This document shows, piece after piece, positions 3,308 to 61,331 of a DNA stretch of 64,000 bases. The first letter of the stretch is position 1. Every line of letters begins with the position of its first letter. The DNA lies in assembly GCA_038496445.1 (NCBI GenBank), contig JALMLS010000461.1:1-64000 (forward strand), given 5' to 3'. The DNA is from Trichosphaerium sp. ATCC 40318. Lineage: Eukaryota > Protista > Tubulinea. The position numbers were made by a program, and so were the translations under genes. Under the pieces are notes generated by a model. The model was not told the origin of the DNA. It was given only the letters and a program-made list of their open reading frames with translations, and did no database searches.

Positions 3308-3512
3308 GCTTTGGAGTTCGTTTAGTAATGTTATACTACATTTATTTAAACTTGTATTTTCGTCAAACAAGACTTTAGAAGAAAAAATAACTTCTTCATT
3401 TTTTTAACCGTTCAGAAAATAATTTACCCAACTACCCGAATGCAGTCTGTTAATAGTTAACTTTGTACGGGTATCCGGCTATTGAATATTAGTCATTCCG
3501 CGCTCAAACTAC

Positions 3513-3648
3513 AATTTCAGCAAGAATTTTCTTTGTGGAAACCTCTGTGAAGAGACTAGTTTTGTGGCGTTCTCAAAAGACTTAAACCAAAAAAAAAAAG
3601 AGATACCTTGCACAAACAAACGTTAAAGAAAACTGACTAAAGTATTAT
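3513..3648. repeat. ~135-bp dispersed repeat, copy downstream of the PAN-repeat gene
   Basis: Similar to 6616-6751 (ttttctttgtggaa.cctctgtgaag..actagt..gtgg.gttctcaaa..A-run..aactg.cta.agtattat). Mirrored at 31116-31225. Confidence 0.8.
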
Positions 3649-3677
3649 GAAGGGTCTTGAGACTTTATTGATTGTTG

Positions 3678-6615: not shown

Positions 6616-6751
6616 AATTTCGACCAGATTTTTCTTTGTGGAACCTCTGTGAAGGTACTAGTTTGTGGGGTTCTCAAAGCCTAAAAACCAAAAAAAAAGA
6701 AATCACGTGACAAGACAAAAAACTGTAAAAATTAACTGCCTACAGTATTAT
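6616..6751. repeat. ~135-bp dispersed repeat, copy downstream of the mucin-like gene
   Basis: Direct repeat of 3513-3648; mirrored at 28016-28153. Confidence 0.8.
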
Positions 6752-6881
6752 CTAGCTTCAATGCTATTGTATCACATAAGATCTGTTAAAACTACAAAAT
6801 CTGGTCAGTTCTGGAAAAAAACTAGTAAATAATCTTTATTGTGTTAGTGCGTATCTTTCACAAAGTCTAGTACAAGATGAT

Positions 6882-24687: not shown

Positions 24688-26080
24688 TAACGTTCCCGAG
24701 TTATTGGACTTTTGTGCTTCTCAAAACCGCTTCTTATTTAGCTACACAATACCGTGGTTATTTTTTACTTTTACATTTCATTTATTTTATTCCCAAGTTT
24801 TGTACTTCTAGACTACTAAACGAGACAACTGTGAGGAATTTAGTAACATGGCAGTAGCTAACGTTGCTATGACCAACTGGAGGCAATTCGCGAAATAGAA
24901 GTGGCGTTCGAATTTTGTGTTCGAGAGCGACCGCCTACCGGCTTTGATTAAAACTAACAGGCTTTCTACTCGCTTGCATCTTGTTGAGCCATTTAGAGTT
25001 TCGATGTTCATTTTTTTTTACAGTTTTCACAAGGTCTAGAGCTAGATTACGTATGCGTTCCACACACGCTTATCTCTACAAGTATAAAAAGCTCCTTTTA
25101 GGTGGGAGCAGAAGTTATATACATTGTACAGCAGTTGAAAACGGTTTGCTCTCTAAAATCGAACAACAATACTCTGTACACCGTTAATTACGCGTAGAGG
25201 GAGTGTGGGTGTGCACAAAACGCCGTTTAAAACAAAAAGGGCCCCTTTTGCTTAAAACTCTACAGCTGGCGCTCTAATTGTTATAGTAGTACTCTATGTG
25301 CATAGTAGTAGTGCATAAAGTATAGACTCGTTCTCGTGAAACCGGTCATTGTTTCGGTAAGAAGCTTTCAGTAAAACTATGTTCCCGCTAAATTATGTCT
25401 CCAAATAATCGTGCGACTTTTCACAAGCGCTTACAGACATACAAGATGAAATGATTTGATCACAAAAAACACCAAAAATCATGAAATTTCAGAATATACT
25501 TATGCTTTATTGAAGTGGTCCCTCAATGCCGTTACGTGTCCTAACCAGAGTAGCCGTATTAGAGTACTGTGCTAAGTTAGGCACATTTTGACTTCTATAA
25601 TAGACTGTTATTAAGAGTGCACTAATATTTGACACTGGACATTAGGTGTCACGAGCGTGATATTAAACTGTTGCCAAAAATAGACAAATCTCCAAAGTTT
25701 GGCGCTACCCGAAAAACCAAGAAAGTTCAAAAGTGCAAGTTGTTGTATAGTTGGTGAATGGACTTACAGGATGGAATTATTGCAACAATAGTTAGTGTAT
25801 TTATAACTTTTAAGTGTTTTACAAACAAATTAATTTAAAGCCGTTGCTATTTTTGTCAATTGTAACTAACTAAGCTATCTATTATTATCATTTTCTCACA
25901 ATGATTAAAGCACTTCTATGTTTATGTACTCTATTCACCTTGGCGCTTTCTCTAAGTATGTACTTGCCATAGATAGAGAAGCTGTATTTTGGCACACTTG
26001 AAAAAAAAGAAGAGTAGCAACACTGTGTTTTGGTAACTTTTCATTAACTTCTCCATGTAGGTGAAGGCGATTCAGGAATA

Positions 26081-26710
26081 GGGACGATTTTTGTAAGCAG
26101 TTCACACTTTCAAAAAAATTCTAGGACACCTCAAAAACGTTATTTATGTCCAATTTTTGAGTATACTTCAGAACACATATGTGTTTATAATATATATTAA
26201 CGAGAACTTGCTGGTAATTAATAGTGTGCTTCAATCAACTATTTCATTGAAACTAAAACTGAGTTATTTCTGCTTGGGATCATATTCTTATCCTCTAACA
26301 CCACCATGTTTTGCAGGTAACTCTTTTACATCATGATGAGTAAGGATTACATTCTTTCGTTTAATCCATTTTTTATCACTTTCAGTGTCCCACATAAAGC
26401 TATCGTCACCTGTCTCTAGACCGGATTGTTGTCAATTGGTCGTTCTTTTGAACAATCATTCTAATCCACAAAAACCTTTTTCAAATCTTTCCTTTTGGCG
26501 GCAGGTGCTCAATAAATCATGGTGTACGTATGCACAGTTATAGCGTATTTGATAATTTTGGTATCAAAATACAGAGGTTTCTTTTTCAAAGAAGTTGATG
26601 AACATAATATTTACATGAAAATGTCAAAAAACTCACTCTTGCTTGGGTACTTTATTGCATCAGAAGCCACAAAGGTTGATGTAGTGTGAACTGCATACAA
26701 AAATCGTCCC
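26081..26710. mobile_element. 630-bp non-autonomous DNA transposon (MITE) with TA target duplication
   Basis: 27-bp TIR gggacgatttttgta(a/t)gcagttcacac with TA on both sides. The empty site ggaaTAtgtac is seen in paralogs at ~7806 and ~23957. Confidence 0.95.
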
Positions 26711-27270
26711 TATGTACAATAAAAGTTCCATCTGTTGGTAACTTTGATATTGCAGCTGATTCTAGTGAACCAAACAACCCCAACTTCATTGTTTCTGATG
26801 CAGCTACAGAGTATATAGTAACTTATCCGCAAAATGAGCACAGACTTGATATTAACGCAAATTCGGCTCGATACGACCTTGACCTTTTCCAAAATGGCCA
26901 AACAGTAGCTCTTGTAATAGAGTGTGTAATGGATCAACCAGTTATAGGAGGTATCAAACTACGAACATCTTATCTTTTGTAAGGAAGTGGTCTTGCCCGC
27001 CTTTTGGCATAGCTGTAAGCTAGACTTCCTTATACTTTAGCACTTGTTTAGCCAAAGTATTCTAACATTTCTTTAGGAATTACTTTAGTTTCACATAATT
27101 TTACAAACGCTCCAAATTCTTTCAATTTCAATGCAACGTCATTCACGTATGTTCGAGTAGTAACATCCTTTAATTTATATTAACTTTTTGCGTTGTAGTT
27201 TCGCAATTGCGCTGCAGCCGCAATTAACTCCCCACCTGTCTACTGTAAGTTTTCAGATAGCTACTTTGGT

Positions 27271-27620
27271 TCCAACGACATTACCACCCACAACTTTGCC
27301 TCCACCTCCAACAACGCTACCTCCAACAACATTGCCTCCAACAACTCTTCCACCAACAACACTTCCACCAACAACATTACCTCCAACAACTCTTCCACCA
27401 ACAACACTTCCTCCAACAACATTGCCTCCAACAACTCTTCCACCAACAACACTTCCTCCAACAACATTACCTCCAACAACGCTCCCTCCAACAACACTAC
27501 CTCCAACAACTTTGCCTCCAACAACTCTTCCACCAACAACTCTTCCACCAACAACGCTACCTCCAACAACACTTCCTCCAACACTACCGCCTACAACACT
27601 ATCACCAACAACGCTTCCTC
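27271..27620 (+). repeat. Coding 15-bp minisatellite (PTTLP)n
   Basis: About 20 degenerate ccaacaacNctNccN units; far fewer in the left-arm copy (7140-7250). Confidence 0.95.
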
Positions 27621-29924
27621 CTAAACCATCTTTGCCAACAACACAACCTCCTACAACACTGGCACCAGCTTCTTCTCCAACGTTTCCAATATCAATAATA
27701 ACAGTACAACCAACAACAACAACGCCAACAGCAACACCAACAGCTACTCCAACTAATCAAGGTGTTATGACACAAGCACCAATAATACAAGCATCATGCA
27801 CACCTGTAGCTTCTTCATCCAATAAGCTAATTTCTATGTATTTCATGGTGTTCAACGTTTTGGCATTTGTGTTGTCTTTATTTGTAAATCATCTTGTACT
27901 AGACTTTGTGAAAGATACGCACTAACACAATAAAGATTATTTACTAGTTTTTCCAGAACTGACCAGATGTTGTAGTTTTAACAGATCTTGTGTGATACAA
28001 TAGCATTGAAGCTAGATAATACTGTAGTCAGCTAATTTTTACAGTTTTTTGTCTTGTCACGTGATTTCTTTTTTTTTTGGTTTTCAGGCTTTGAGAACCC
28101 CACAAACTAGTACCTTCACAGAGGTTTCCACAACGAACATTCTGGTCGAAATTCAAGTTTATCTTTAACAAGATCGAAATGGAGCAAAGGGAGTTGACCT
28201 GGATTACGGGTAAAAAAGATTAACTATACATTCTTTAGTTGGTCATTACCCAAACCATCTCCATGCCTTATATTTGTAAGGCGTTACTTGTAGGTACTTA
28301 AAACATGTGGATTCTTAAAATGAAGTACACGCTCACAGTGAACAATGATAAAATAAAACATGAGATTTAGTTTCTCTTTTGCCGATAATCCGTGTCAAAC
28401 GCTACCAATAGGAGTGGCCTTTTCTAAGAAGGCTTAGCGTTTAATAAAATAACTTTATTTCAGGAAAAATCCATCACTCCTGGTACATGCTTTCAGGAAA
28501 GTACATGATAGCAAGATGGCCATTGTCTTGTTTTATTCATCTTGTAATCTCGATCGGAAGGTAGCTTGCTATTTTACCTGTGGTTGTTATTATACAACGA
28601 GTAATGTAAAATCAACTGCAAATCTCAAATGGATGCAAAGCAAACCGCTTGCAGTGTAACATTAGAATTAACTTTGCATTAAAACGAGTGAGTAAAACCC
28701 TAAGTATATTTTACTTTGGATTAGCGGCTACACTACGCTATCTAACAGCTCTGTAACTTTGATTTTGCGTTGGAAGGAATGTTTGGGTGGATAGCTTACA
28801 GATCAAAGGATTCTTGGTGACGTGGTGCTCCAAAAATGATCAGTTTTTCAGGCTGTGAGGCGTAATTTGTAAGTTGGAAACATAGTACAAATGATCTTTC
28901 CTGGATATCTTCCAGAAGAATGTAACGCAATGAAGCTGTAAACTCTTTTTGTTTGATAAGAGGAGTGGTAGGTAACCTTTCTATTTATTTGGGGTAGCGG
29001 TACACTCTATTGAAATTACACGTTCTGGAGAATAAAGGAGTGATATGTATAAGCAGTAGTATAGTGTAATTACAAATGAATTAGAAACCAAAGGCACTAG
29101 CTAGTGAAGTTTTTAAACAGGCTTTATTACACGTAAACCGACATTTACAAAGATCATTTACACTTTTTCGTGAACGGCTATTTATAATTCGCGAAGTGAA
29201 GTGATGCTAACTAGCGGGCAGGACTACTTCATAACTTCAAGAGCACAGTACACAGCGTTAGGCTCTAGCAGTATGTAGTGCTATTGTAGGCCACTATAAA
29301 CATATCACAATTTACACAATAATCCAAGTCTAAACACTGTTTAAGGATAACGCACATATATCCAGGGTAGGGTATTAGATCTAACCTACTCTATGTATGT
29401 TTTAGGTCACTAGAAAATACTCAAAGCCCTAAAAACGGCCCGCAAGTCTGGTTAGTTGAATATCGTCATGTTCGTGAATTAGAGTCAAAGTTGCAGTGAA
29501 TCAGCTGAATTCAAAAAACGCATAACAAGTTGTGTTTAGGAGTTGTAAAAATATGATTTTGAAACACCTAGCACGTGATTAATCTGCTACGCAAGGATAA
29601 AAAGTTTCGATTTTGTTGTGCGAACGATTTTGGGTTGTTGTTGGCGTAAATCAACATGTCAAAAAAGGAGAGTAGATTCATATAAATAGACACTTTTTTT
29701 GTGTTGGTTTTCTGTTAACATTTTTCATGTTCTGATAATTTTTGCGTTCCACATTACTTGTTACCTCTAGTTTTATCTCTTATTCTCACCAATGGATTTT
29801 TAGTTATGTCCCTTTGGCGTATTCAACGTTACTTATTTGTTACCTCTAGATATCTCACCAATGTAGTGCACATACACAAACGTGTTAAGCAAAAATAGCA
29901 CAATTTACCATAACTCTCTACAAG

Positions 29925-31085
29925 ATGACACGTACTTCTGTACCCCTTATCGTCTGTATTTTATCTTCCCTATCGATCGTCTATGCCAACACCTACAATA
30001 CTCTTGCCTCTGGATCAACACTCACTTGTCAAGGATGTAGAAAAGACATGCATTCTGGACGCTTTGTCTACTGCGATGGATATTACGCTGGCTCGACTGT
30101 AACCCACTGTGACTGGGTGGGCGGTGCTGGAGAATGTACCTTTCCGCGGGATACCTCTGTTACGAAAGCTGAGTGCCAACAAATGTGCGATAACGACTCT
30201 CGATGTGGATTCTATACAAGCTACTACAACTCCATCTGTAACTTATTCTTCATGACCTCCTGTAATCTCATTTCTGGCGGTGCCTCGGGAGATACCTTAG
30301 AAAAAGTTGTAGCAGCAACAACGGCACCCCCAACATATGCGCCAACACCCCCACCTCCAACGGACCCACCTACGACTGAAGCACCAACAGATCCACCAAG
30401 AACCTACAGCTCTCTAGCGACAGGTTCAACACTCACATGTCAAGGATGCCGTAAAGATCTGTTTGCTGGTCAATTTGTGTACTGCGATGGATACTACGCT
30501 GGCTCTACAATTACCACATGTAATTGGGTAGGCGGTCCCGGAGAGTGCACCTTCCCCCGCGATACTTCCGTTACACACGCTGAATGCGAGCAAATGTGTA
30601 CTGACGATCCAAGATGTAACTTTTTTACAACGTACTACGACTCTATTTGTAATTTGTTCTACATGAATACTTGTACACTCATCAGCGGTGGAGCTTCAGG
30701 CAATACGTACTCTAAAGACCCTGTAACCGAGCCGCCGACATTAGCACCAACCGAACCTCCTCAAACCTACACTTCTCTGGCTTCAGGCTCAACTTCTACT
30801 TGCCAAGGATGTCGCCGTGATATGCATGCGGGAAGATTTGTTTACTGTACTGGGTACTATGCTGGATCGACTGTAACCCACTGTGACTGGGTAGGCGGTG
30901 CTGGAGAGTGTTCGTTCCCAAGAGACACATCTGTGACTAAAGCCGAATGTGAACAACTTTGTACGGCTGATTCAAGATGTAACTATTACTCAAGCTACTA
31001 CAACTCTGTATGTAACTTGTTCTACATGAATACTTGTAACTTAATCTCCGGTGGTGCCTCAGGTGATACTTACAGTAAAGATTAG
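29925..31085 (+). CDS. Secreted triple PAN/Apple-like repeat protein, right-arm copy
   Basis: 386 aa, differing from the left copy at only 2 residues. TATAAATA at ~29681; AATAAA at 31094. Confidence 0.9.
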   Translation: MTRTSVPLIVCILSSLSIVYANTYNTLASGSTLTCQGCRKDMHSGRFVYCDGYYAGSTVTHCDWVGGAGECTFPRDTSVTKAECQQMCDNDSRCGFYTSYYNSICNLFFMTSCNLISGGASGDTLEKVVAATTAPPTYAPTPPPPTDPPTTEAPTDPPRTYSSLATGSTLTCQGCRKDLFAGQFVYCDGYYAGSTITTCNWVGGPGECTFPRDTSVTHAECEQMCTDDPRCNFFTTYYDSICNLFYMNTCTLISGGASGNTYSKDPVTEPPTLAPTEPPQTYTSLASGSTSTCQGCRRDMHAGRFVYCTGYYAGSTVTHCDWVGGAGECSFPRDTSVTKAECEQLCTADSRCNYYSSYYNSVCNLFYMNTCNLISGGASGDTYSKD

Positions 31086-31410
31086 CAACAATCAATAAAG
31101 TCTCAAGACCCCTTCATAATACTTTAGTCAGTTAGGTATCTCTTTTTTTTTTGGTTTAAGTCTTTTGAGAACACAAAACTAGTCTCTTCACAGAGGTTTC
31201 CACAAAGAAAATTCTAGCTGAAATTGTAGTTTGAGCGCGGAATGACACAAAGTTAACTATTAACAGATTGCATTCGGGTCGGGTAGTTGGGTAAATTATT
31301 TTATGAACGGTTAAAAAAATGAAGAAGTTATTTTTTCTTCTAAAGTCTTGTTTGACGAAAATACAAGTTTAAATAAATGTAGTATAACATTACTAAACGA
31401 ACTCCAAAGC

Positions 31411-33308
31411 ATGTCGAAGCATGGCACACTAATAATAGCTGGATGGACAGTTTGTCTCATGAGAGATGTTTAGATATCTACAATATCTAGATAATCTAGA
31501 TAATTTCGCCAAAACTAGATAATTCACAAGTATCTAGATAATTTAAAATATCTAGATATTATAAAACGTGGTTTCAAATCCCACTTCCTATGGTACAACG
31601 TGGTATTTGAAACCATATGAAGGTGCCTTATTTTCGAATATCTAGATAATTTGTAATATCTAGATATTTTTCGCAAAACTAGATATTTCACAAATATCTA
31701 GATACTGTAAAATATCTAGATATCTCAGATATCTAAACATCTCTATGGCTATTTTACCAGTGATAGTATGGTTTGGTTTAATTCTACACCACATAGCGTA
31801 TGTTGAATTTAAATATGTCTTTCACACGTGCTTTGCGGAAACAAAAAACCGAATATTTCTCTTATGATACCATGATTGGCATAGCCACATACACGTTATT
31901 AATTATTGAACTTGTTTTAGAAAACACGATCTCAGATATCAGGATGCAACATGTCAACTAACAAGCGCAAATGTAAGTCTATCGACGTGTTGTCATATTG
32001 TAAATTGTGTATGCAGTGATATGTACGAAATATCAAACTCTGAAATCCGCTCACTTTACCTCATATCACCATAGACACCATGCACAAAGTTGCGAGCGTC
32101 TCATTACAGTAAGATAGGTTTAAAATATTGGTTTTTAACAAAACTATTGCTAGGATAAGAATAATGGCACGTGCGGTAATGGATATGGATGTTGTAAGTC
32201 CAGACGTATATGTGATGATGACGGATGCTACGATAAATGTCAACAAAGCGTGGAAAATCAACAGTGCAGTGTCGAATGTAATCCTTGTTGGGTGGTTGAG
32301 GCCGAGGTTTGTTGATTCTGTATTGTAGTGTTCAATACTAAGCTTGTGTATAGTGGGACTATACATGCCATGCCGGCAACAAAGACAAATGTTGCTTTGG
32401 TAACAACAATCGTCATGTGGCAACTACAGCTTTTGAACAACGTTCAGATGCCCTGATTCATCAGACTGAGTACCAAGTAAGGCGTATCTCTTTATTATTG
32501 CTCTTCGTACTAATATCAAGTCAATAGGTTTTCAGCAATCGCAGTTGTTTCTATAATCCGAACGATTGTTCAGAAATACTTTTTTATGGAGGTACACGAG
32601 TACTTACTCTCTCCACACAACAAGTTAATCTTTGTCTATATTAGGCGTAACTACTATTTTTTGGGTAGCATTAGTAATATTTTCTGTAATAATTATTGCG
32701 ACATTTATGGGGTGTTGTTCGACTGTGTTTGCTCTTGTGTTACAAAAACAAGTGAAGGCACGTGTTGTATATCCTATCCTAGTTTGCTTATATATTGTTC
32801 TATGTAGATTCCCATCACCATCGCTGTTTGTTTATTTGTGTGGTTGAGCATCATTGTTCCACTTGTCATCTTTGTTCCAATAATCCGTCATGGAAGTAAA
32901 CTTCTCATCCTTCCATCAACCAAAGATGGTTTGACAATCGCTGCATTCTTCTTTGGTGGTCTAGGTGCTGCCTTGGTACCAATAATCACGTTTGACGAAA
33001 TTGATAAATGGCAACGAAGAAAGCAGTACAACTGTTCAAAACTTGATGTGGCTTGTATTGTTGTTGGGTTTTCAATCGTTCAATTCTTCTTACCTATCAG
33101 TGTTGCAGCACCTATAGCGTATATCAGAAAATCAAAGGTTTTCATGATCATCACATTTGTGCTTTTAGCAATACCTTTGGTATTTACAGTTGTTGCACTC
33201 CTGTACGGAAGGTGTTTGGCAATCAAAAGAAAACCAAGAATGGATGCCAAAAAAGCTGCGATACGAATCACTCCTAGAGTTGCTGCTATTGCAACTAAAC
33301 CGACTTGA
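31411..33308 (+). pseudogene. Cys-rich-loop multi-pass membrane protein, right-arm copy, exon 1 interrupted by a MITE
   Basis: MSKHGTLIIAGWTVCLM-[insertion]-MAILPVIVWFGLILHHIA; downstream exons are collinear with 40368-42183. Confidence 0.7.
31462..31744. mobile_element. 283-bp foldback-like MITE with 3-bp ATG target duplication
   Basis: Perfect 18-bp TIR agagatgtttagatatct with ATG on both sides, many (a)tctagata subterminal palindromes, absent from the left arm. Confidence 0.92.
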
Positions 33309-33884
33309 GGGGATAGAACAAAAGCTGATTAATAAAATTTGGTTTTAGATAGCTATCGTGTTGACTACTTGGTGCCTTTACCCTTAGGTTCTTTTGTAGA
33401 CACGCTATTTCTTGAAATGGTTTTTAAAATACTGTCAATGCTAAAAGCAAACAACCGATAATTCTGCTCTGGATTTTTGATTTCAATGAATGTTGATTTA
33501 ATTCAAGGTCAATTGTAATAAACCTTTCTGCCTCTTCAAGGTAGAGATTCACAAGACTCTTAATAATCTTATTGAACCAACAGAATGTCATAAACGTTTA
33601 CTGAATGGACGCAATGGGAACACGTGATATTACTTCCACCTAGTCTTGTGAAGGGTCCATAGTTAGCCATAGTGTCACAATCTTGTAAACTACACTATTG
33701 CCCACGGTGAAATTATGTTTGAAATAGTTTCGCTTTATTACCAGTAACCAATTTACGTACCAACTAGCTGAACTTTAGGCAATTCTGTTATTGAATAATC
33801 TCGCTTGGTACAAAGCTCTAAACCCACAGTTAACCACAGTGAACTAATCATGCAAAAACTTACTATTATAAATAATTGTCTACA

Positions 33885-35593
33885 ATGATGTCAACCGCCT
33901 TTGTTGTAGTTGTTTTGTTCATCACTCTCCAAGTTCATTGTATGTTATCTTAGCCTAACAAAACCTTCTTACTATAACAATAGGCCGTCTTTCTAGTAGC
34001 GATTATATCCTCTACAGTAATGAGAACGGAACACGTGCGCCAATATTAACTACAATTGTTGGTGGAGAAAAGACTGTTGCTATAATTGTAAGTGATGATG
34101 AATATACAACTAGCGCAAATACGCAAGGTTCAATTGAAAACAAAATGTATGTTTACGTAAACACAGCTCAAGGTACGCTTTGCGAAACTCTTCTCAAATA
34201 ATAACCTTAATTACATACAGAGGTGAACGAAGGAAGATTGAACTTGCTTGATACTTTAGATGGAAGGCTTGTCGAAGTTGTTGAAGGTCCTGACGAGATA
34301 GCTATATTTGCTTTTTATAGTAATAGATTCGGAGTTCGATACGTACGACGCGATGATACACACGTGCGTTTAGATTTTCTTCCTTTTTGCTGATCTAACG
34401 TCATTACACTTTAGTATTACATCACAGAACTCATTGAGTTGCTTCAACCAGCATTCGCATCATCACTTCAGAGTGTCGCTTCCTTCGAACCAAGTAATAT
34501 AAATCCAACTACTCAACAACTCTTATTTTTTGCTTAGTTTATGGTCGTTATTACTGTGGATACACCCAACCTTCTCGAGGATTTGTATTGTATTCAATTT
34601 CGAGTAATGGAAGCGTTATTAGAGAGCAACTATTGAGGGGAGGTAATAGTTTGTACCTTTGAACCTTACATTGTCTGAGTGGCTTCTTTAGACCAGTACA
34701 CAAATGTGACTCAAGCCCAACTGGTTTATCACAAACAAGGCCACCTAATTTTAGCTTTTATTAAGGATACCATCTTATCGTTTAGCACGTTTAAGTTCAG
34801 AGTAAGCCTATGCATATGTATAGACTCTAAGTATAACCGCAGGTTCCAAGTGGACTTATCTTCTATGATCCATTGCTTAGTATAAACAATACAAGGTCGT
34901 TTAGAATGATACACAACAAAGCCTTAGACAAACATGTACTAGCATACAACTTGATGACACCTAACAAAGAAGCTTATACAACTGTGATAAACGGCAATTT
35001 TAGGCTTCTAGTTTTTACTAATCCCGTGTTCATTGCAGAGAACATAGACTTCAATAGATTTCAAACATCTGAATTTATTGACATTGCATCAACTGAAGAT
35101 AAAGTCCCTGGAGTTGTTGCTTATATCACTTACCCAGGCGAGAAATTCCAACCGATATTAAGACTAAACACAGGAGGGACTGTAGTCAGAGGTGGATTAT
35201 ACTTTAAGGAAGGACCCGTTGAAGTGTCAAACATTGGCTTTGGATTTAATTGTTCAATAATTGTACGCAGAGTGTCACTTGTTCAGCTTCTAACTATTCA
35301 TGTAGCTTTCAGCGCAAGCAAAACGGCTTGGTCCTTTCTACTACAAAGTTATCAACTTATGTGAGTTTGATGCGGAGCCTCTCATACCTTCTGCTGTTCC
35401 TACTCCGATGCAGGGTGCGCCATTTTCAATACGAGAGCCTGCCAGTACACAGACACCCACTTCAAGTCCCATCACGCCGTCAGCAATTATTGCACCATCT
35501 ACTGCTCCTACCCCGCTTACATCATCATCCAAACTCAAATTTCTTTCATTGTTTATAGTTTTCTTACTGTGGGCCGTTCTTATGCACCAATAA
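33885..35593 (+). CDS. Secreted surface protein with Ser/Thr/Pro stalk and GPI-like C-terminal signal
   Basis: TATAAATA at ~33867, signal peptide, multiple short introns; ends PTPLTSSSKLKFLSLFIVFLLWAVLMHQ*. Confidence 0.8.
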
Positions 35594-36930: not shown

Positions 36931-39900
36931 ATGCGAGTTTCATTTTGCTTGGCCTCGCTTTACTTGGTTTCTCTTATTGCGACTGTATACTGTGCTTCAA
37001 GACCTACAGAGTCTGTACCTAACTGCGATGCTGCTTCTTCTGACTGGGGATGTCCTCCTGACGAATACAGAGTTTTCGGAAATGGTAGAATAGACAGACT
37101 TACCTGTAACAAACGACCAGAACCTCGAATGTCATGGGCAACAAAGGTAGTTCGAAGCAATGCCTACAGCACTTGGGCTGGCGCAGAAGACGCTAAAGAG
37201 ACCAATTATGTCCCAGAAAAGGTTATGGACATTAGCATTCGTGTCAACAACTATGCCTTCAAATACCGCGGTATTCTTATCTATGCTCAAGATGCAGATG
37301 GTAACAGAGTTGGTGAATGGCTTCTACCAGATGAAAAGAACCGTACGGTGAAAAAAGCAAAAATCACGTGATTAGAATATTGCAACACTACATTTTCTGT
37401 CTTTGTTTTTTTTGCTTTTTTACTTGTCGTTCACGTGTTGACATCTTTTTGTAGCGTTCTTTCAATTACCTTGGCCTGATACACATGAGTGTCGCCAAAG
37501 TATAACACACAACAGTGCTGAACTTAAGCCTCTCAAGTCAACCTGGAAATGGAAGGCTCCTCCAAAGGGAACAGGTCCAGTAACGTTTCACTGCTTGATT
37601 AAACAAGGTGATGCTAATACTGGCGCGTTTTATTGGCCAAACAATGCAGGACAGGGACCACTCAAACTCACCGAATCAACTGCAAGTAAACCACGCCAAA
37701 CATGGTTTCAATCCAACGTGAGAGTCTTTTTTGTATTTTCGTCTGTATGAAACTAATGTTTCTTAGAGAGGTCAATCTTGTACTGATAGATGCGCTGAAG
37801 AGAACCTGCAATGTGATAAAGTCCATATGGAGCGTGTTAACAGCCCTACGAGAATCGAACAGCTCATTATTCCACAAAGTTTCCCATGCAAACTGCCATA
37901 TGTCAGTGGATGTAGCAACAAAGGAGCTACAATGGGTACCGATGGTCTTTGCTACTATGATGACACCAGATGCGCAGAACAAGGACGTAACAGTCAACCT
38001 GTGACTTGTGAATCAAGAAGTGGTGATACAAGAATTGGGTATGCTAACATCAAACTCTTGCTTTTGTTTTTTTTGTACTTCAATGTAATTGAACTTACTT
38101 TTTTTGTTAGACTTCGTATGTGCAAATGTCTCGCATCTACTCTTCCTCCTGCCAACCCAGGTAGAACTGTTATTGCTGCAAGAGGTACAACTTCACCTGC
38201 CACAAAATCAACTGCATCTTTCTTATTCATGGCTCTCGCTGTCCTTGGCTTGACAATGCGTTCAACCGGAAAGATGTCAACAACACTCATCTTGGCTCTC
38301 TTCCTCGTTGCTATGGTTTCCTTACCATCAATTAATGCTCATAACTGGTCAAAAAGCTACTCTAGAAGCCAAGACATTGCAAGTACAACAACACCTTGCC
38401 CACCAAAACGACAGCCTGCCCCTCATGCTCAAGTTGGGAAAAACCAAAAATTCGAAATCGAATGGACTGTTGGTCACACACAGCCTTCATACTATGTCAT
38501 TGTGAAGGCAGAAGATGAGGCAAGACTCAGCGAGGTTTCATTCGCTGCTATGAACGCCTACATGGACAATGCGCCTAACAGCGCATGCCAGAACTTACCT
38601 GTATACCACAGACAGTTTAGAGCTCGCGATGCTGGCTTCGACCCTTTCTTACAATACTACAGTGGACCTATCCCTGAAACTTCTCCAAACTTTATTCCAA
38701 GACCTTTCGGCGTTTGGCGAGATGATGCTACTTTGTTTGGATATAAAAACGAACTTGAAGTAAGAAACTACTGCGAGTATAGAAGCAATGACTTGGATTT
38801 TGTTCTTGGTATCTTCAAGTTCGAACATTACGCACACAGACCTCAAGATGCTGATATGGTAAGGCTTTCCATACCAGCTGATGCCCCTTTTGGTGATTAT
38901 GTCATACAATGGCTATGGAGAGGATATAGAGATTGTGTTGATGTTAGCTACGTTAATAAGCAGATAGAACATATTTATGGTCTTCCAAATCCTGCTGGTG
39001 GATTCACGTAAGTATTGCTTTGTCTTTTTTTTTTTTGCAACCCGTTTTCTTACTCTCTTTAGCCGTATTGATCATTGTTACTTACCAAATCCACGTAATG
39101 TTTATGGTACGTGATATCTTTAAGCTTAAAAATCATGTGATTTTTGTTGTGAAACACGTGTTTTTTTTTTTTGAAAAGAAAAAGTTGGTGTGCTTTATTG
39201 TATTCTTTGTTCGCATTATCCTTTCCTGACTTTTTTTATAGAATGCCATAGAATCTATACAGGCACAGATATTTGCGCCAGGTATTGTCAAACAAAAGGC
39301 GGATGCAACGCTTTCATTGTTATGCCAAGATCACTAGTTGCAAACAGTTACAACAGTCAAGCCGACCTTATTCCTCAACTGTGCAGAGATAATGTTGTAG
39401 ATCTCGGAGAAGATGCCAAAAACGTTGATATTTGCTTCACTGTACGTGGGCGTGTTCCATCTGAAACTTTCGGATTAGAAGAAGTTGTACACGCTGGAGA
39501 TCCAGCTTACCACTCAACATGTTACATCAAAGGATCTGGTCGCCTCTTTGAAGACTATGAAATACCTCCTCAACATCAAGATATCCCTTGGAGACACGGA
39601 GACGAATGCATCTCTTGTGACGATGTGAACCTGAACAAAAACATAACGCGTGTACCTAAATGGCCATTAACAAACGACTGCCGAAACTGTGACTTGGAAC
39701 CAAAAACGGACACGCCACCTTTCAACCCACCTAAACTGGTCCTCCGAGAAGCGAGCAAGTTCTGCGATGGACATGCTAGTTATTTAAACCTTGGTGGAGG
39801 TACGAGGCATCATGATTGTCCTGGTGATACATGGAAGCAATGTAAGAAAATTGTCTACATAAGAGGACGTGCTTCACCTTGGCACACCCGTCATTTTGCT

Positions 39901-40107
39901 GGTGATTGCGCTGCAGCTGCAGCTAAAGATCCAGAGTGTTCAGATGAAATCTACACTCAGAACATTAGCAATATAAGTTATCAAGGTAGATTTGCTGTAA
40001 AATGCTACTGTATGACAAAGAAGGCTTGCTGCAACGGATGTAGACCAAGAACACCAGGATCCAATGCTAACCTTTGGAATGTATACACTCTGGACCGTGG
40101 ATCCTAA
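36931..40107 (+). CDS. Reeler domain + Cys-rich domain + TM + internal signal peptide + His-brace LPMO-like domain + PAN-like/Cys-rich tail (predicted polyprotein)
   Basis: Introns at 37343-37454, ~37718-37766, 38039-38110, ~39008-39062 and ~39107-39241 join into one frame. Reeler motifs: YVP..V, YRGILIYA, VGEW, ITHNS, WKAPPKGTGPVTF. LPMO-like motifs: INA|HNW, EWTVGH, YVIQWLWRGYRDCVDV. Confidence 0.85.
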
Positions 40108-40367: not shown

Positions 40368-42183
40368 ATGCCGTACGATGAAGTGGTTGCTCCAGGAGGT
40401 TTCTGTTTGGTGGTAGTTGTTGTTCCAGCGATCATATGGTTCGGTATTGTTATGCACAACATAGCGTACGAATACAAGTGCAGAGCTACACTTGGAGACT
40501 TTTATTTTTGTTTTGAATTAATCACATGTTTCAATCTTTTTGGTAAAACGCCTTACCTTTGTTCGTGTAATCACTTCAAACTTGTAAGCTCTGTTTTTAT
40601 TGAAATACGACATCATTTTGTTCAGAGAAAAGTAGCCTCGTTTCATTACGTTTTATTAGCCGAGCTTCAAAGTATTGAACTCTTGGTTTAGAAAGCACGA
40701 CCTTAGGTTTCAAGATGCGACTTGTCATCTTTCAAGCGCCGACGTGAGACCATCAGTATGTTGTCAGATAGTAAATTGTTCATGCAGTAACATGTACGAA
40801 AAGACTACTCACAGTGGTCACTCATATCACCATAGACATCATGCACATAGTTGCGAGGGACTTATTACAGTAAGGTGGGTTAAAGTGTTGGTTATTAACA
40901 AAACTAGGATAAGACTAATGGCACGTGCGGTAATGGCTATGGATGTTGTGAAACAACACGTAAATGCCATGGTTTTGCTTGTACGCTTACCAACTTCTTT
41001 GTGCGTACAATAATGTGGGCTAGGTCAAGACAAATGTATAAAAAGCGTGGAAAATCAACAGTGTACTGTCGAATGTAATCCTTGTTGGGTTGTTGAGGCC
41101 AAGGTTGTTTATTCTGTTTGCAAGCGTTCAATACTAAGTTTGAGAATATAGTGGGACTATACATGCAATGATGGCAACAACGATAAATGTTGCTTTGGTA
41201 ACAACAATCGCCATGTGGCAGCAACAGCTTTTGAACAACATTCAGATGCCCTGATTCATCAGACTGAGTATCAAGTACGTTGTCTCTTTTTTTTGTTCAT
41301 TTTTCTCAGCAGCAATAACTGATATCAAGTCAATAGGTTTCCAGCAATCACAGCTGTTTCTATAATCCGAACGATTGTTCAGAAATAGTTTTTTATGGAG
41401 GTATAGTACTGCACTCTACAAACGAGGCACTTTATCTATCTTAGGTGTAACCACTGGCAGCTGGATTGTTTTAATTATACCGGCTGTTATACTTGTTTTG
41501 TCATGCATTGTATATAGTGTAGGCGCCAGTGTTTTTGCCCTCACATCAAAAGTAAAGGCACGTGTTTTATTCATTAATAATTTCATTTGTTTATTTGTTG
41601 CGGATAGCCTTTAGTCACCATTGCTTCATGCACATTTGTGTGGTTGAGCATCATTGTTCCACTTGTCATCTTTGTTCCAATAATCCGTCATGGAAGTAAA
41701 CTTCTCATCCTTCCATCAACCAAAGATGGTTTGACAATCGCTGCATTCTTCTTTGGCGGTCTTGGCGCTACCTTGGTACCAATAATCACGTTCAAAGAGA
41801 TTAACAAATGCCGAGCAACCCGCAATGTTAATATTTCAAAAGAGGCACTGATGGGCGTTGTTGTTGGGTTTTCAATTGTACAATTCTTCTTACCTATCAG
41901 TGTTGCAGCACCTACAGCGTATATCAGAAAATCAAAGGTGTTCATGATCATCACATTCGTGCTTTTAGCAATACCTTTGGTATTTGCTACTATAACACTA
42001 ACCCTATCGCTACTGTTAACACATTGTCAAAGGAATCAGTCCAATACCAGCAACAAGAAAATCAGAAAACGCAAAACCTCAGCTTCTGATATTCCTATTG
42101 AAACATCTACACCTAATAAAGGCAGCGAAATGGAATCTATCTATTATGGAGATAGCCCGTATGATATTTCTGAAACTGGGTGA
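40368..42183 (+). CDS. Multi-pass membrane protein with Cys-rich extracellular loop (apparently intact family member)
   Basis: N-terminal TM; exons DKTNGTCGNGYGCCETTRKCH/GQDKCIKSVENQQCTVECNPCW, WDYTCND..KCCF and HSCFYNPNDCSEIVF; then about 5 TM helices. Confidence 0.75.
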
Positions 42184-44355: not shown

Positions 44356-45899
44356 ATGTTTCTTGCTTGCACTAGAGCTTCCGTTGTATCAAAAGGGACT
44401 AGTTTGCAGTACTACACGCGCTCTCAACGAGTATTTGGCTGCAACAGCATTAGAAATTGTCATGATGCCGCCACCGCGCGTAAAATAACTAAAAACTGGA
44501 GTACGTAGCATTATAACGAAAAGTGCTTCAAAACTAAACTCAATCGTCTTAAACTCGAGCTCACGCGTCACTATAGAACAGGCACAACGCCAAAAGGAGA
44601 GATACCTAGCGAAAGGAAAAAACCATCATTTATGGCCTAGGGAGTTTACAAAGTTCATGCCAAGCATCAAAGACTATAAATTCGCTACGCTAGAATTCAA
44701 TAAGCTCCAAAAGAGAGGAATAGCAAACTGCGAATGCTACAACACAATGCTCAGCGAAACAACGCGTAATTGCTTATTTCATGGTTACGTTAAGCGACGT
44801 AACAAGGACGGCAGTCCTGCGATACAAGATACGCCTGTAGTTGCGTTTATGAAGGAGTTCGAAAAAAACGGCGTCAAACCGGATGTAACAACGTTTAATA
44901 TCCTTGTAGACTTCTACGCACGCTCAGATTCACCTCAGGAGTTCTTAAAGTATTATAAAAGTATCCTATCAGCTAGTATGAAGCCAACAATACTTACTTT
45001 TACGAGTATTATTGATTATTACACGAAAAAATATAATTGGATAAAGGTTGACTTTTGGCTTGATGAAATGTTCAAGTATGGTATTAAAAAGGATGGATAT
45101 GTATACTCTATATTATTTAGAGGTTATGGAGGCTCTGTACATAGTAATAGGTTCAACACGTTGCTCAAGGAACTCAAGAGAGATAAAAATTTTACACCGA
45201 ATAGTCATGTCTTTACGGAGATCTTAAAAGGGTTTATCAAAAGAGGGCAGGATTCTAAAATACCAGGTCTTATCGAGGAGATAAAGAAAGCTGGGTTTTA
45301 TCCAAATATAGCAGTTATAACTGTTTTAGCTAGATAGTACGTGACAACAACGTTCTTTGGTTTTTTTTTCTGATCTCGTTTTTTCCTATTTTTTTCTTTA
45401 AGTATTGTTTGTGTTTGTACATGATTACTTATTTTCTTTTTTAAGCTACTCTCGTAAAGAGTCAGTTAAAGATCTTGATAAACTACTTAAGGATGTTAAA
45501 GAAGCTAAAGACTTTTCTCCTAATAGATGGTTCTTGAATGTAATGATAAGATCTTACAATACACTTGGTGAGGTAGATAAAGAGAAAGAGACAATGGAAT
45601 ACTTGCATAGCCTTGGTTTTGAAGATGTAGATAGGAAAACAAGGATCTCTCTTTCAAATACAGAAATTCTAGATACAGTACCTCCTCTTGGTGATGAGTA
45701 CCATGATTATACATCAAAGTTAAGGCAAAAAAAATATAATAAGATTTATATTGATGATGAAACAACCTCAAGTGCTCCTACTAAAAATATGGAATCACCT
45801 ATTGGAGTACGTGATTTCATTGATCTATTAAATGAAGAAGGTGATGAGATTAAGGATTCTGAAAGCACTCCACGTAAAACCGACTTTTCAGCTCTGTAA
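44356..45899 (+). CDS. Pentatricopeptide-repeat protein, probably mitochondrial
   Basis: 35-aa repeats (GVKPDVTTFNILVDFY, KPTILTFTSIIDYY, KKDGYVYSILFRGY); basic, Ser/Thr-rich N-terminus. Confidence 0.88.
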
Positions 45900-54366: not shown

Positions 54367-55620
54367 ATGGTGCTGTACTCTCTAGTTGTTGTATTGGCGT
54401 GTATTGGCTGTATGATTAAAGGACAAATTACAAATTTCAACACCGCAAGTAATATTTGCCAACAAAAGCACGTGATATTACGAAACTTACTTTAAGATCT
54501 AACAATGATTTAGTGGCACAATGTTGCCAGAGATAATTAGCGAAAACGATTTCGAGTTTTTCTTTTACAAGACAGAATCCCTACGGACCGGTTCCGACAG
54601 CCTGTGGCTTAATGCGCATCGTAACGACGATAAAAATTACACGAGGAGCACCTGTCAAGATTGCCGTAACATGAAAAACTGTACAAAATGTGAAGAAGCA
54701 TTATCATCTTTCACCTGGCAGAATAGTCAAACACCTATTTTACAAACTGATCTGTTTCTTGTTGGTGCCAATGGGAGTATTCATACGTTTTTGGTCAAGT
54801 ACTTCAAGAACACCGGTGAACCTAGCTTTGATGGCGCTGGCGGTCAAGAAAGATGTCTTCAGATGCAAAATTTTTTTGGTATGCATCTACATTGTGTCTA
54901 CGGTTGACTGTATCTAGGCTTCAATGACGTCCCATGTAGCTCAAGAGGTTGGCCCGAATGTACTAGTATACCTACAATTACCCCTACAACTGTAGCACCG
55001 AGAAGTATAGTACCTACAGGCACCATATCGCCTAGCTATAATTCCGTCATTGACGGCACCTTTTCTGTAGTTGGAACAACGTATGCCACTTTAGGTAAAG
55101 ACTATAATTACACATGTAAATAACCAAAAATAGGAGATGTCGTGTTTGCAGAGAATACAGTGATTGTTGTTGGTTCTAACTCATCAATCTCAATAGGAGG
55201 ATGTCCTATTTTTAAAGACAACATAGTCATTGATACAACTGCAGTGAGTATTGACTCGTTGACATTGATGAACTTTAGAGATGATTGTGTGATTGATACA
55301 CAAAATGTATCACTTTCAGACATGAACTCATGCTTTAAACAAAGTGCGTAATAACCACAAGTTGAAAGTGTTTCCTAACCTTCTCCCAAACAGATACAGT
55401 TGGAAGTTTAGTTGTCTTATTTTCTTCATCCTGTTCAACACAATCGGATGGTGGCACTGATTTTCCATTGTTACCAGTAGTGATAGCAATTGTATTTGTA
55501 GTTCTTCTTGTAATTTTGATATTGGTATTGACACTGATCATTCCATCATGGCGAGAGCACATTTATCCTTACAGTTGGTCAACACATTCAAAACAAAAAA
55601 GGAATGCAGTAGTACAATAA
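54367..55620 (+). CDS. Type I membrane C-type-lectin-like receptor, copy 1
   Basis: Signal peptide; FxxAxxxC..LPEI..WLN..FTWQ..EPS..ERCLQM..FNDVPC..C; stalk; beta-rich domain; TM; short tail. First intron is GC-AG. Confidence 0.8.
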
Positions 55621-56829
55621 ATAGATGGAAAAGTTACTTATTGCTATCTTGAGCACTTTGAAGCGCCTTTTGGTGAGTATATAAGCAAGAATTAACACGC
55701 TTGCAAGATCCAAGAGTCAGTAACAGCAAAAAGTTACAAAGTGTTGCAAACTTGAACGATACCCACATAAACAATTGTTGTGTAACTACATTTTCTGCGG
55801 AGTGGGTGCTTACGTTTATCTTTATTTAATCCTCAAAAAGCTTACAGCTGGTTTGGTACTCGCGGACATGTTTTTTTTTTTTCCACAACAAATTCTGAGT
55901 TTTTGCTTAGATGTGTTTCAACTCAGCTCAACTTGACTTTGGCTTTGTCGACTCAACTCGACTTAAAACTGAGTCATTAGCAGCACTAGATCTACATTAG
56001 TTTTTCTGTTTACCGTCACAAAGTGAATGTCTGGATTAGAAATACGTTCAGAACAAAGTGTCGGAAATAGTGAATAAACTTATCATGTGCAACAAAAACA
56101 AAAAGGGCAACGTTACCCTCACACCTGTCGAGTGCATCCAATCGCTTAAACCCACGTGATTTACCAAACTCATACAATGAAGGATAACATAGTAACAAAT
56201 AGTTCACATTGTGATAGATCTACACCATTTGACAGAAATGTCAGATCTTGCTAGATCTGCTAAAAGTGCCAACTATCCATGAAACATACAATAAATCAGT
56301 TTTTTATTACAACTTTACTTAAAATCAGTTTTATTCGACGTTTGCTTAGATTCCTCTACAAATCTTTGCACCAAAATCATGTCGTGAATGTGATACTTGA
56401 GCTTGAACCCGAATTTTTCTAAGTATTGGTGGGAGAAGTTCCCATGTGCCTGATATTAATGTAATAAGTCACAATACTAAAAACAGCCTTAAATACTCAC
56501 CTCGGATCGTTTAAAATGCTTAGCCTAAGCGAAGATGTAAAGTACACGCTCATGTTTCTACAGGTTGTATGCCTGTCATGGATGTAGCTTTTACACCATG
56601 GAAAAACACCCTTTAAAAACTTGGACAAATTATTTGGATTGTACCGAGTTTCTCTGAATGTTGCACATCACGCGATCAGTTTAAGTTAAATTTGTGCAGT
56701 CAGTCTATCTATTATACACAACGCTATAGGTTGATAAAGCGTTTATCTCATTTTGTTTATTCTTACACTAGGCCGTAGTACCTCAGCGTTTCTTTCCAGC
56801 AAACTAGAACGACAACAAGTAAAGTCAAA

Positions 56830-58058
56830 ATGGTAGCGCACGTGTTATACTCTATGGTTATTGTATTGGCGTATATCGGTTGTATTAAAAGCCAGTATAG
56901 AGATTTCAACGACGCAAGTAATATTTGCCAACAAAAGCACGTGATACTACGAAACTTACGTTATAATCTAACCATGATTTAGTGGCACAATGTTGCCAGA
57001 GATACTCAACGAAAATGACTTCGAGTTTTTCTTTTACCAGGCAGGATCTGTACCCGGTCTAAGCAACTTGTGGCTTAATGCGCGCCGTAAAAATGATACT
57101 AATTTCACAACGAGCACTTGTCAAGACTGCCATAAAACGGGAGTAAATTGTACTATATGTGAAGAAGCATTGTCGTCTTTCACCTGGCAGAATAGTCAAA
57201 CACCTATTTTACAAACTGATCTGTTTCTTGTTGGTGCCAATGGGAGTATTCATACGTTTTTGGTCAAGTACTTCAAGGTCAACTTTCTCGAACCTAGCTT
57301 TGATGGGCCTGGCGGTCAAGAAAGATGTCTTCAGATGCAAGATACTTTTGGTGTGCATCTACATTGTTTCTACAGTTGACTGTATCTAGGCTTCAATGAC
57401 GTCCCATGTAGCTCACAAAGTCAGATTTATTGTACTAGTATACCTACAATTGCGCCTTATACCATAGAACCGAGCAATAGGGTCATTGATGGCACTTTTT
57501 CTGTAGTTGGAACAACCGAAACATTCTTGGGTACGTCTAGCAATTGTTAATAAGTACTAAACATTTGAAAATAGGAGATGTCGTGTTTCTGGAAGATACA
57601 GTGATTGTTGTTGGTTCTAACTCATCAATCTCAATAGGAGGATGTCCTATTTTTAAAGACAACATAGTCGTTGATACAACTGCAGTGAGTATTGATTCGT
57701 TGACATTGATGAACTTTAGAGATGATTGTGTTATTGATACACAAAACGTATCACTTTCAGACATGAACTCATGCTTTAAACAAAGTGCGTAATAACCAAC
57801 AAGTTGAAAGGTTTCCTAACCTTCTCCCAAACAGATACAGTTGGAAGTTTAGTTGTCTTGTTTTCTTCATCCTGTTCAACACAATCGGATGGTGGCGCTG
57901 ATTTTCCATTGTTACCAGTAGTAATAGCAATTGTAGTTGTAGTTCTTCTTGTAATTTTGATATTGGTATTGACACTGATCATTCCATCATGGCGAGAGCA
58001 TATTTATCCTTACAGTTGGTCAACATATTCAAAACGAAAAAGGAATGCAGTATCATAA
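56830..58058 (+). CDS. C-type-lectin-like receptor, copy 2
   Basis: Tandem paralog with intact frame. Confidence 0.8.
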
Positions 58059-59974
58059 TAAATAGAAACGACATAAACACTTTTTGTGTACCTACATTAT
58101 TATTATATTTCTCTTTGTTTAATCCTCAGAAGCTTACAGCTGGTTTGGTATTTTCTGACATGTTGTGCAGTTTTTGATATTTTTTATCAACGTTATTCCT
58201 CTTTTTTAGCTTAGAAATATCCAAGTAATTTTTGGAGGTAAGCTATTTACTAGAAAAAACCCTCCTTTCTAGGAACGCTAGAGAGGGTCACTTATTTACA
58301 CGATATTACAAAAGGTAGTTATTTAGGTATTTGGGTCGTTTGCTGATACGTTTAATGTTTTTGGTGGAGCATCGCTGTTTATGGATGACATCTCCATTAC
58401 GTGTGATGCGAGCCACTTCGTGTCCCATAGCAAAGGCCGCCTCATTTCGCTGAGCAACAAACATGGTGTGTTGTGGGTGTATCTCTGTAGTCAATATATG
58501 CTGGTGTTTCATAGTCTTTGTTGAAGCTCCAAAATCCAAGCTCACTGTTCCAGAATATTCAAGTAAACATCAAAGCCTAGTCATCGTCCCAGAGACAAAA
58601 CAACCCAAAAAATTGATGAAAGGCAAATGAAACTAGCCCTATTAGGGAAACACTTTGCTAAACTTAAAGCTCTGTGTATTAATTTAAATGTAAAGAATAA
58701 AAACGAGCTTCGTTCTCTGTCTTAGAAGTAATTTCTACCAGGTAAACTAAAAAACTCAGTCAGTTTTTTATACAGCCTTAAAAGAGTTAGGGTTTTGTTA
58801 CTACTGTTCATATTCACAATGTGTCTTACTGGGGTACTTTCTGTATTAAGGCAGTTACTTAACACAATGATTATCATTGTTTACCATTGGCAGCGTATTT
58901 GACTACCTTAAGTTAGTTGTGTTGTGGAATAGTTCACAAATAACACATCATTATGCAACGCTTCTTTTTTCATAACACTGCTCTTATAGGTACTCTTGGT
59001 GATTTTTCAAACCCATTTTAAAACCTTGAAAAATCATGTTTTTTCGTTTTTCTTATTGTAGAAAGTGGGTGTATCTCGCAAGTAAAACAGCCGTTTGGTA
59101 TCTTTTTTTGAACGTGTGCAATTCATAAAGAAAATTGAGCTCGTTCTTACAAGGTATTTTACGGTGCCCGTGTTTTCAATACATGACCGCTATGTAACCG
59201 AAACACTCTGGTTACAATTAAAGGTTGGGAAACGTTGGGCGTCCAGAGTTATTTAAAAACTGAATTTTTTGCCATTTGTTATGAAAAGACCAATGTTTAC
59301 CGTAACACTCTCTAATCAAGCTTATTTTCACTCTAAACTTGATTGGGTATTAAAAAGGCTCTAGAGTAACGTTTCGACATTAAAAATTTCAATTGAAAAT
59401 TTGGGTCGCTAGTCACAATCCCATGAAAAAAAAAAAAAAAGTTGCATGAATTGCAAAAAAAAAAACTGCGACTTAAAGAGTGCCTAAATTAAAGGGCCTA
59501 CTGTCTAGGCATTATTGTAACATTAATTAGACTGGCTAGGATCTATGGCTGTTTGCGTTAAATTACTGTTAACAGAATGGTAATTTCTAAAACACGTGAC
59601 ATAAAATCAGAAAATAAGTAGATGTACTTAGTCTAACTAGTAAAATTAGAGGATGTGCTAATCTAAGTGGTGAAGTTAGAGGATGTGTCCCCTTACTTAA
59701 CACCTTGTATCCCATTAGTGAAACTCTTTGTAGAAAAGCGAATCATAATAAACTATTAAAGACAAGCCCTTTAAAACTTGGACAAATTATTTGGATTGTG
59801 CCGAGTTTCACATCCGCGATCAGTTTAAGTTAAATTTGTGCAGTCAGTCTATCTATTAAATACAACGCTACAGGTTGATAAAGCGTTTATCTCATTTTGT
59901 TCAATCTTACACTAGGCCATAGTACCTCAGTGTTTCTTTCCAGCAAATTAGAACGACAAAAACTAGAGGCCAAA

Positions 59975-61167: not shown

Positions 61168-61331
61168 CCATTTGAAAACCAAAAAATGAATGTAGCAAAG
61201 AAAAGAGAGATGAAGTAAATTGTTCTCTGTTAGTCTACTCGTTTAACAAGTACGCATTTGTCTGCGCTACTACCAACTGAAGTGCATTCAAGTCATTTAT
61301 TTACAATTACGATAGCGTGGCTGTTTATTTG

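Follow-up and report, generated by a model that had tools for sequence, protein, structure and literature searches.

The 64,000-nucleotide stretch of DNA considered here (hereafter the window; positions 1 to 64,000 of the forward strand of contig JALMLS010000461.1, assembly GCA_038496445.1) comes from Trichosphaerium sp. ATCC 40318, and carries on its plus strand, at 36931–40107, a gene of six exons that join into one 917-residue frame without a stop (Table 1). The precursor comprises, in order, a signal peptide, a Reeler domain, a Cys-rich module, a linker, a hydrophobic segment (H1), the basic loop RSTGK, a second hydrophobic segment (H2), a β-sandwich domain beginning His-Asn-Trp (HNW), an exon encoding the motif RIDHC and a Cys-rich tail. 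The original prediction, drawn from the letters of the window, had read this as a polyprotein in which removal of an internal signal peptide exposes the N-terminal His of an enzyme resembling the lytic polysaccharide monooxygenases (LPMOs), behind a membrane-anchored Reeler module. Its coordinates proved correct throughout, and the single spliced frame it proposed holds and is collinear with homologues.

All five introns are of the GT..AG type and measure 49–135 nucleotides. The spliced protein aligns with its relative P0002 in a single high-scoring segment pair (residues 1–899 to 5–883, 32% identity, E = 1.7e-135), and its first 300 residues match the profile of the relatives' N-terminal parts (A3) at 285 bits; because the homologue alignment is in one piece and the N-terminal profile match runs across the exon joints, the splice model is supported. 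H1, the loop, H2 and the entire His domain lie within a single exon, exon 4. In two amoebozoans, Flabellula baltica (with two paralogues) and Rhizamoeba saxonica, the nearest relatives are complete open reading frames (ORFs), each on a single Trinity transcript, another full frame lies on a single MMETSP transcript of the Euplotes focardii data set, and an intronless gene of 1276 codons with the same junction is present on a 182-kb contig (P0154, L001). Seven further genomic contigs have 264–660 open codons upstream of HNW. A search of the 64-kb window found no second copy of the gene.

The junction between the two halves of the precursor has the layout of a polyprotein cut by signal peptidase: a hydrophobic segment, a short loop and an internal signal sequence with a −3/−1 site. 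H2 bears the marks of a signal peptide, namely a preceding positive charge, a 13-residue hydrophobic core and then S-L-P-S-I-N-A, with the His codon (38340) next. That a second signal peptide is directly followed by HNW is thus confirmed in the sequence, and the features of the junction are kept in 90 relatives. Across the family the H1 core has a median length of 12 residues (quartiles 10–15), and H2 together with its c-region a median of 20.

When the 244 residues starting at Met 38274 were run by HMMER against 1.8 billion representative proteins, 393 representatives matched at E ≤ 1e-3, of which 184 also did so at E ≤ 1e-10; the HNW and junction counts cover the best 150 of the 393 matches, and the total of members with an internal HNW differs by analysis (90 for the junction, 97 for the placing of Met, 99 for the omega-like triplet, both of which are taken up below). 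Of the 150, 135 have HNW at the aligned place: 90 of these carry it internally, 37 (some of which may be truncated gene calls) immediately after an ordinary N-terminal signal peptide, and eight are ambiguous. The internal HNW lies mostly 300–450 residues from the protein start, and relatives with the helix-loop-helix-HNW junction share 25–40% identity. Most of the 15 matches lacking HNW start downstream of that position and appear truncated, and P0081 has HQW. One match, the bacterial fn3-repeat protein P0150, was set aside as spurious and is no family member; a search for homologous proteins with profile A1 returned four fragments only.

All 135 proteins have Ala, Gly or Ser (with one Thr) at position −1 and Ala, Val, Thr, Ser, Cys or Gly at position −3. 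The internal type taken by itself has A/G/S at −1 in 90/90 and A/V/S/T/C/G at −3 in 90/90, against backgrounds of 0.31 and 0.41, and is if anything more canonical than the N-terminal type: −1 is Ala in 76, Gly in 10 and Ser in four; a Pro or Gly lies at −7 to −4 in 71 of the 90. The conservation of these residues therefore means that the internal segment is constrained just as a cleaved signal peptide is. It had been anticipated that helix, signal peptide and HNW would recur inside Reeler fusions and that homologues would keep the His, and both expectations are borne out in the homologues. Judged from these sequences, selection has conserved the junction across a large family, far beyond chance, and the best explanation of them is that the gene encodes a secretory-pathway polyprotein belonging to this family, which is one of microbial eukaryotes and as yet without a name. 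In a tree of the copper domain the N-terminal and internal types are interleaved, with at least 7–8 changes between them forced by well-supported branches.

Because the same domain stands directly behind an ordinary N-terminal signal peptide in 37 relatives, the His must be residue 1 of the mature chain in those proteins. An alignment of 91 domains, selected on His1 and not on other residues, has His1, Asn2, Trp3, Arg9, Cys20, His46, Tyr74, Gly195 and Cys199 invariant, with Tyr196, Asp198 and Asp201 conserved in at least 90%, and the family end motif reads Y-[IV]-x-x-W-x-W-x-G-Y-x-D-C-x-D-V. The second His singled out by the original prediction is thus invariant, and its Tyr nearly so. AlphaFold2, run with the family alignment, gave a β-sandwich whose strand following His46 is succeeded by a helical insert (predicted local distance difference test, pLDDT, 92; predicted template modelling score, pTM, 0.90), and its two best structural neighbours among 48,161 chains are both histidine-brace proteins. 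In the ESM Atlas, a search by shape reached a template modelling (TM) score of 0.53 to a eukaryotic cluster of which 19% of members carry LPMO_10, and a search by features led, at 0.91 and with 199 of 256 features shared, to clusters bearing LPMO_10. Given an invariant His at the signal-peptidase site, an invariant second His together with the last-strand Tyr, and structural neighbours that are histidine-brace proteins, the sequences and the model make it likely that this is a histidine-brace copper domain of the LPMO superfamily, outside every named family. That it cleaves polysaccharides oxidatively would be a guess; by analogy, copper handling as in X325/Bim1 may fit as well, and a part in the handling of electrons is conceivable.

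As the histidine brace makes use of the free N-terminal amino group, that of residue 1, it binds no copper while the signal peptide is still attached, and all known classes of such proteins use an N-terminal signal peptide for this (PMC10952591). We propose that in the Trichosphaerium protein signal peptidase probably splits the precursor, freeing His1 for a copper histidine brace and at the same time producing a membrane-held Reeler protein. The first signal peptide would bring the Reeler and Cys-rich part into the lumen of the endoplasmic reticulum (ER), H1 would halt translocation, the five-residue basic loop would remain cytosolic, and H2 would restart translocation so as to place the C-terminus in the lumen. 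The ER signal peptidase would then cut after P-S-I-N-A and make His393 the free N-terminus of the β-sandwich domain, whose His amino group and imidazole could hold copper together with His46, with Tyr196 nearby. Two products would result in a ratio of 1:1, a membrane Reeler protein, held by the hairpin of H1, loop and H2 or, after more processing, by a GPI (glycosylphosphatidylinositol) anchor, and a copper-domain protein with a Cys-rich tail which in this gene would have no anchor of its own.

Several observations weigh against this account. At 13 residues, H1 is marginal here for a membrane-spanning helix, and position −3 is Ile, which is tolerated at that position yet absent from it among the 135 relatives. 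H2 of this gene opens with a Met (38274), and transcription of this gene could start at about 38.2 kb. Foldseek searches of PDB, AFDB clusters and Swiss-Prot gave weak E-values, TM scores of about 0.3 and mixed matches, among which AA9 and AA10 LPMOs are frequent; of the LPMO-type fold originally expected, the confident β-sandwich and the histidine-brace neighbours stand, with these weak and mixed matches on the other side. No Pfam model matches the domain of the window, AA9 (PF03443), LPMO_10 (PF03067, for AA10 and AA15) and BIM1-like (PF20238) included, and the 91 relatives have no family to which more than a single member matches except AA9 (three members, with E no better than 0.005), which agrees with the earlier remark that the domain belongs to no named family. 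A search of all PDB sequences with the family profile returned none at E ≤ 10, and one with the 38-residue motif around His46 nothing relevant.

The hydrophobic segment that was first read as a membrane tether is present, but with 13 residues (family median 12) it is short and at least equally like a GPI signal. It is possible, if tentative, that H1 is or was a GPI-attachment signal and that H1, loop and H2 form a doubly cleaved linker, which would be a refinement of the proposed splitting more than a strict rival to it. Transamidase would cut before H1 to leave a GPI-anchored Reeler protein, signal peptidase would cut after H2, and a hairpin of about 45 residues would be discarded; the arrangement could have arisen when the gene of a GPI-anchored Reeler protein became fused in frame with one downstream of it that coded for a copper protein bearing a signal peptide. 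An H1 core with a median of 12 residues followed by a very short polar stretch is typical of the tail of a GPI signal and short for a membrane helix. The 16 residues before H1 are rich in small residues (0.50 against 0.35), and 75 of 99 internal members have an omega-like triplet 7–12 residues ahead of H1, compared with 39% for random positions, but this enrichment may merely reflect linkers rich in Ser, Gly and Ala, and the linker of the window itself has no triplet that follows the omega rule. The H1 tail is not C-terminal in the precursor; an internally placed GPI signal proved functional in cells (PMC2288913). The interleaving of N-terminal and internal types would fit repeated fusion or fission at the joint, although some N-terminal-type members are perhaps truncated gene calls.

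A metagenome contig (Ga0170475_102894992) bears on the same point. It encodes a complete family member in which a single in-frame TGA (L009:1010-1012) falls exactly in the loop between H1 and H2, with no Met between this TGA and HNW, and the frame of 993 codons has no other in-frame TGA ahead of its terminal TAA. If the TGA is real, the upstream product ends like a protein with a GPI signal. It could be an error, a read-through stop or fission in progress; an alternative genetic code was considered and is unlikely, since it is the only in-frame TGA among 993 codons that include 49 Cys and 17 Trp codons. A further conjecture, which we regard as rather doubtful, is that H1, loop and H2 together make a self-contained splitting cassette (GPI signal plus signal peptide), gained and lost repeatedly, which would yield a GPI-anchored Reeler or Reeler-DOMON protein and a histidine-brace protein cooperating at the cell surface. 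Were this so, the two products might pair as electron donor and copper oxidase, or in copper uptake, and a stop in the loop, as in L009, could set their ratio.

The domain itself might be a mere β-sandwich binding module, like an LPMO in general shape and without a copper site. The failure of Pfam and PDB sequence searches to match it, and the presence of a bacterial fn3-repeat protein (P0150) among the sequence matches, would be in keeping with this, but we think it unlikely, given a His that is invariant right after the cleavage site, an invariant His46 and a nearly invariant last-strand Tyr196, which together make the histidine-brace pattern. The two best structural neighbours, and language-model features that lead to clusters bearing LPMO_10, argue in the same direction.

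Two hydrophobic segments joined by a short positive loop also make a classic helical hairpin, and the precursor could stay uncut as a two-pass membrane protein with both large parts outside and some other role for the His. This is highly improbable, in that it accounts neither for the small residues which all 90 internal members have at −1 and −3 nor for the helix breaker before them, nor for the His that always comes directly next, nor for the 37 relatives with the same His behind an ordinary N-terminal signal peptide; H1 is moreover too short for a stable hairpin in most members. Least probable of all is that two messages, or internal initiation at Met 38274, make two proteins from a frame that is only incidentally open in this gene: H2 begins here with Met, stand-alone copper-domain proteins exist and the L009 contig has its stop in the loop, but about 90 representatives, divergent as they are, keep an open frame at the joint, both on single transcripts and in genes without introns, and a Met stands in the loop or at the beginning of H2 no more often than chance would have it (in 33 of 97 internal members, with 28% expected) and in none of the nearest relatives P0001, P0002 and P0010, so that separate translation or internal initiation is not the conserved route of the family.

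Host signal peptidase cuts the glycoprotein precursors of flaviviruses, alphaviruses and bunyaviruses at internal signal sequences, and the proposed splitting of the Trichosphaerium precursor resembles these viral envelope polyproteins in design. In both, a stop-transfer segment and a short cytosolic loop, predicted in the present case, come before an internal signal sequence carrying a −3/−1 site, and both yield two lumenal or extracellular proteins co-translationally in a fixed ratio, as is predicted here. The present case differs in being a cellular gene family of free-living protists, and in that the cut would also be needed to create a metal-binding N-terminus.

With X325/Bim1 (LaX325, PDB 6ibh) the domain shares a small sandwich and an N-terminal His right after a signal peptide; both belong, in the present family by prediction, to the cell surface or membrane, and a link to GPI anchors is known for X325/Bim1 (PMC10952591). 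It has no sequence match to that family and no match to PF20238, it is internal behind a second signal peptide, and any GPI-like signal precedes it, on the partner protein, instead of following it. The pattern of His1, second His and last-strand Tyr is that of AA15 (Thermobia domestica TdAA15A, PDB 5msz) and AA10 (LPMO_10, PF03067), and the nearest ESM Atlas clusters carry PF03067 in 13–23% of members. In contrast to AA15 and AA10, all members of the family fall short of the Pfam LPMO models (the faint AA9 matches being the nearest approach), the second His comes early, at residue 46, with the long helical insert after it, and HNW follows the cleavage site. Known LPMOs differ further in that their catalytic domain is always N-terminal in the precursor (PMC10952591).

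The copper-domain superfamily and the signal-peptidase polyprotein mechanism are already known; what is new is their combination in a cellular family, with a cut that would create the metal site. In the full-text literature, outside whose coverage many subscription papers lie, no published description of a Reeler-LPMO, of an LPMO behind an internal signal peptide or of a histidine-brace polyprotein was found. In descriptions of histidine-brace proteins (LPMOs, X325/Bim1, CopC, pMMO), the copper domain always stands at the start of the precursor (PMC10952591). If our proposal is true, this would be the first family in which the brace is unmasked in mid-chain, in a way that is otherwise mainly familiar from viral glycoprotein precursors, and the Reeler domain, whose biochemical role is poorly understood, would be an obligatory 1:1 partner of a copper domain, offering a handle on both. 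The joint of about 45 residues could in addition give two secreted proteins from one reading frame without any added protease. The analysis adds a widespread protist family (393 representative clusters) which current Pfam models do not recognise, and domain-based surveys of LPMO-like proteins may for that reason miss it.

Table 1. Features of the gene and its predicted precursor (positions in the window)
Feature	Position	Strand	Remarks
Whole gene	36931..40107	+	6 exons, 917-residue precursor, stop 40105-40107; GT..AG introns, open frame, end-to-end homologue alignment
Exons 1-6	36931-37342, 37455-37717, 37767-38038, 38111-39007, 39063-39106, 39242-40107	+	
First (N-terminal) signal peptide, ~21 residues, MRVSFCLASLYLVSLIATVYC	36931..36993	+	Read from the sequence; aligned with N-terminal signal peptides of homologues
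Reeler domain, ~residues 60-205, split by intron 37343-37454	37108..37657	+	Match to profile A3, 285 bits
Cys-rich module, ~residues 226-330, split by intron 38039-38110	37767..38153	+	Cys columns conserved in A3
Linker rich in Ser, Thr, Ala and Gly, ending ...ARGTTSPATKSTAS	38154..38219	+	Family: 50% small residues in the 16 residues before H1 against 35% background
H1, 13-residue hydrophobic segment FLFMALAVLGLTM (putative stop-transfer helix or GPI-type signal)	38220..38258	+	Equivalent in 79/90 internal-type homologues
Basic loop RSTGK, presumed cytosolic	38259..38273	+	Family loop median 5 residues, net charge +1 or +2 in 62/90
H2, 22-residue internal signal peptide MSTTLILALFLVAMVSLPSINA	38274..38339	+	Predicted signal-peptidase site after Ala (38337-38339); −3/−1 rule in 135/135 relatives
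β-sandwich, predicted LPMO superfamily	38340..38951	+	His1 38340-38342, His46 38475-38477 (EWTVGH), Tyr196 38925-38927 (GYRDCVDV), conserved Cys20/Cys199 pair
Exon 5, linker motif RIDHC	39063..39106	+	Motif conserved in homologues
Cys-rich C-terminal region, 287 residues, possibly PAN/apple-like, no hydrophobic tail	39242..40104	+	11 invariant Cys; motif DPxDPxFYxTCY

The Reeler assignment comes from the family. Pfam Reeler (PF02014) is found in the N-terminal parts of 26 of 54 relatives that make up profile A3 (best E = 1.8e-11), and the single exons of the window have no Reeler match on their own. Relatives with longer N-terminal parts also start with Reeler and then add domains: P0021 has thrombospondin type-1 repeats between Reeler and the junction, and a DOMON-like domain lies between Reeler and H1 in P0071 (512-558, E = 2.5e-6) and P0075 (339-436, E = 4.3e-4), both under the Pfam cut-off. 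A Pfam search of the window's own exons found no DOMON.

The combination of Reeler and DOMON resembles ferric-chelate reductase 1, and fungal LPMOs receive electrons from DOMON-type cytochromes. Like ferric-chelate reductase 1 and SDR2-type proteins (Reeler, DOMON and cytochrome b561), the present family has an N-terminal Reeler in what would be a membrane-associated extracellular protein, to which some relatives add the sub-threshold DOMON-like domain; unlike them, it has no cytochrome b561 part. By analogy, and as a hint, one may conjecture that the Reeler partner is a redox or metal-handling module. Two smaller observations concern this half of the precursor: the Reeler part in A3 has a near-invariant His (position 130 of P0004) and a near-invariant Lys, and the Cys-rich module (37767-38036; homologues such as P0075:197-291) repeatedly matches, below threshold, the final 85 positions of Pfam Glyco_transf_18 (best E = 1.3e-5).

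At the other end, the PAN and Cys-rich modules of the original prediction are Cys-rich as described, with leads to PAN that are all weak. They comprise Pfam PAN_4 at E = 0.52, Foldseek matches whose best include PAN, MANEC and apple domains at E > 0.5, and ESM features at 0.89–0.91 to PAN clusters with only about 130 features shared; the AlphaFold2 model of this region has a middling pLDDT of 75. No further 3' exon for the Cys-rich 'PPC' tail of relatives was found within 4 kb, and the gene is without that tail. Some relatives (P0011, P0016, P0025) end in a WW domain, and because a hydrophobic stretch comes just before WW in P0011, the sequences suggest that in members of this kind the copper protein is itself probably membrane-bound, with a cytosolic tail. 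The idea of a released enzyme thus suits the gene of the window, which has no C-terminal hydrophobic tail, but is not general to the family.

The window has a G+C content of 37% and contains several repeats. A large inverted duplication, 96–97% identical between 1-8514 and 25366-35027, stops some 1.9 kb short of the gene on its upstream side; both arms contain an ORF of 386 residues encoding a PAN_1 domain (minus strand, 3678-4838; plus strand, 29925-31085), and an indel of some 283 bp (at about 3263 and at 31457-31742) distinguishes them. Some 980 bp of the right arm (32232-33185) recurs at 81% identity just downstream of the gene, at 41029-41985, and the gene is therefore flanked by related sequence. 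Near the right end of the window a tandemly duplicated segment appears as direct repeats of 85–95% identity (56609-58047 and 59767-61192; also 54370-54979, 56842-57451 and 59987-60596). An ORF at 44657-45337 encodes pentatricopeptide repeats (PPR_2, E = 7.6e-21).

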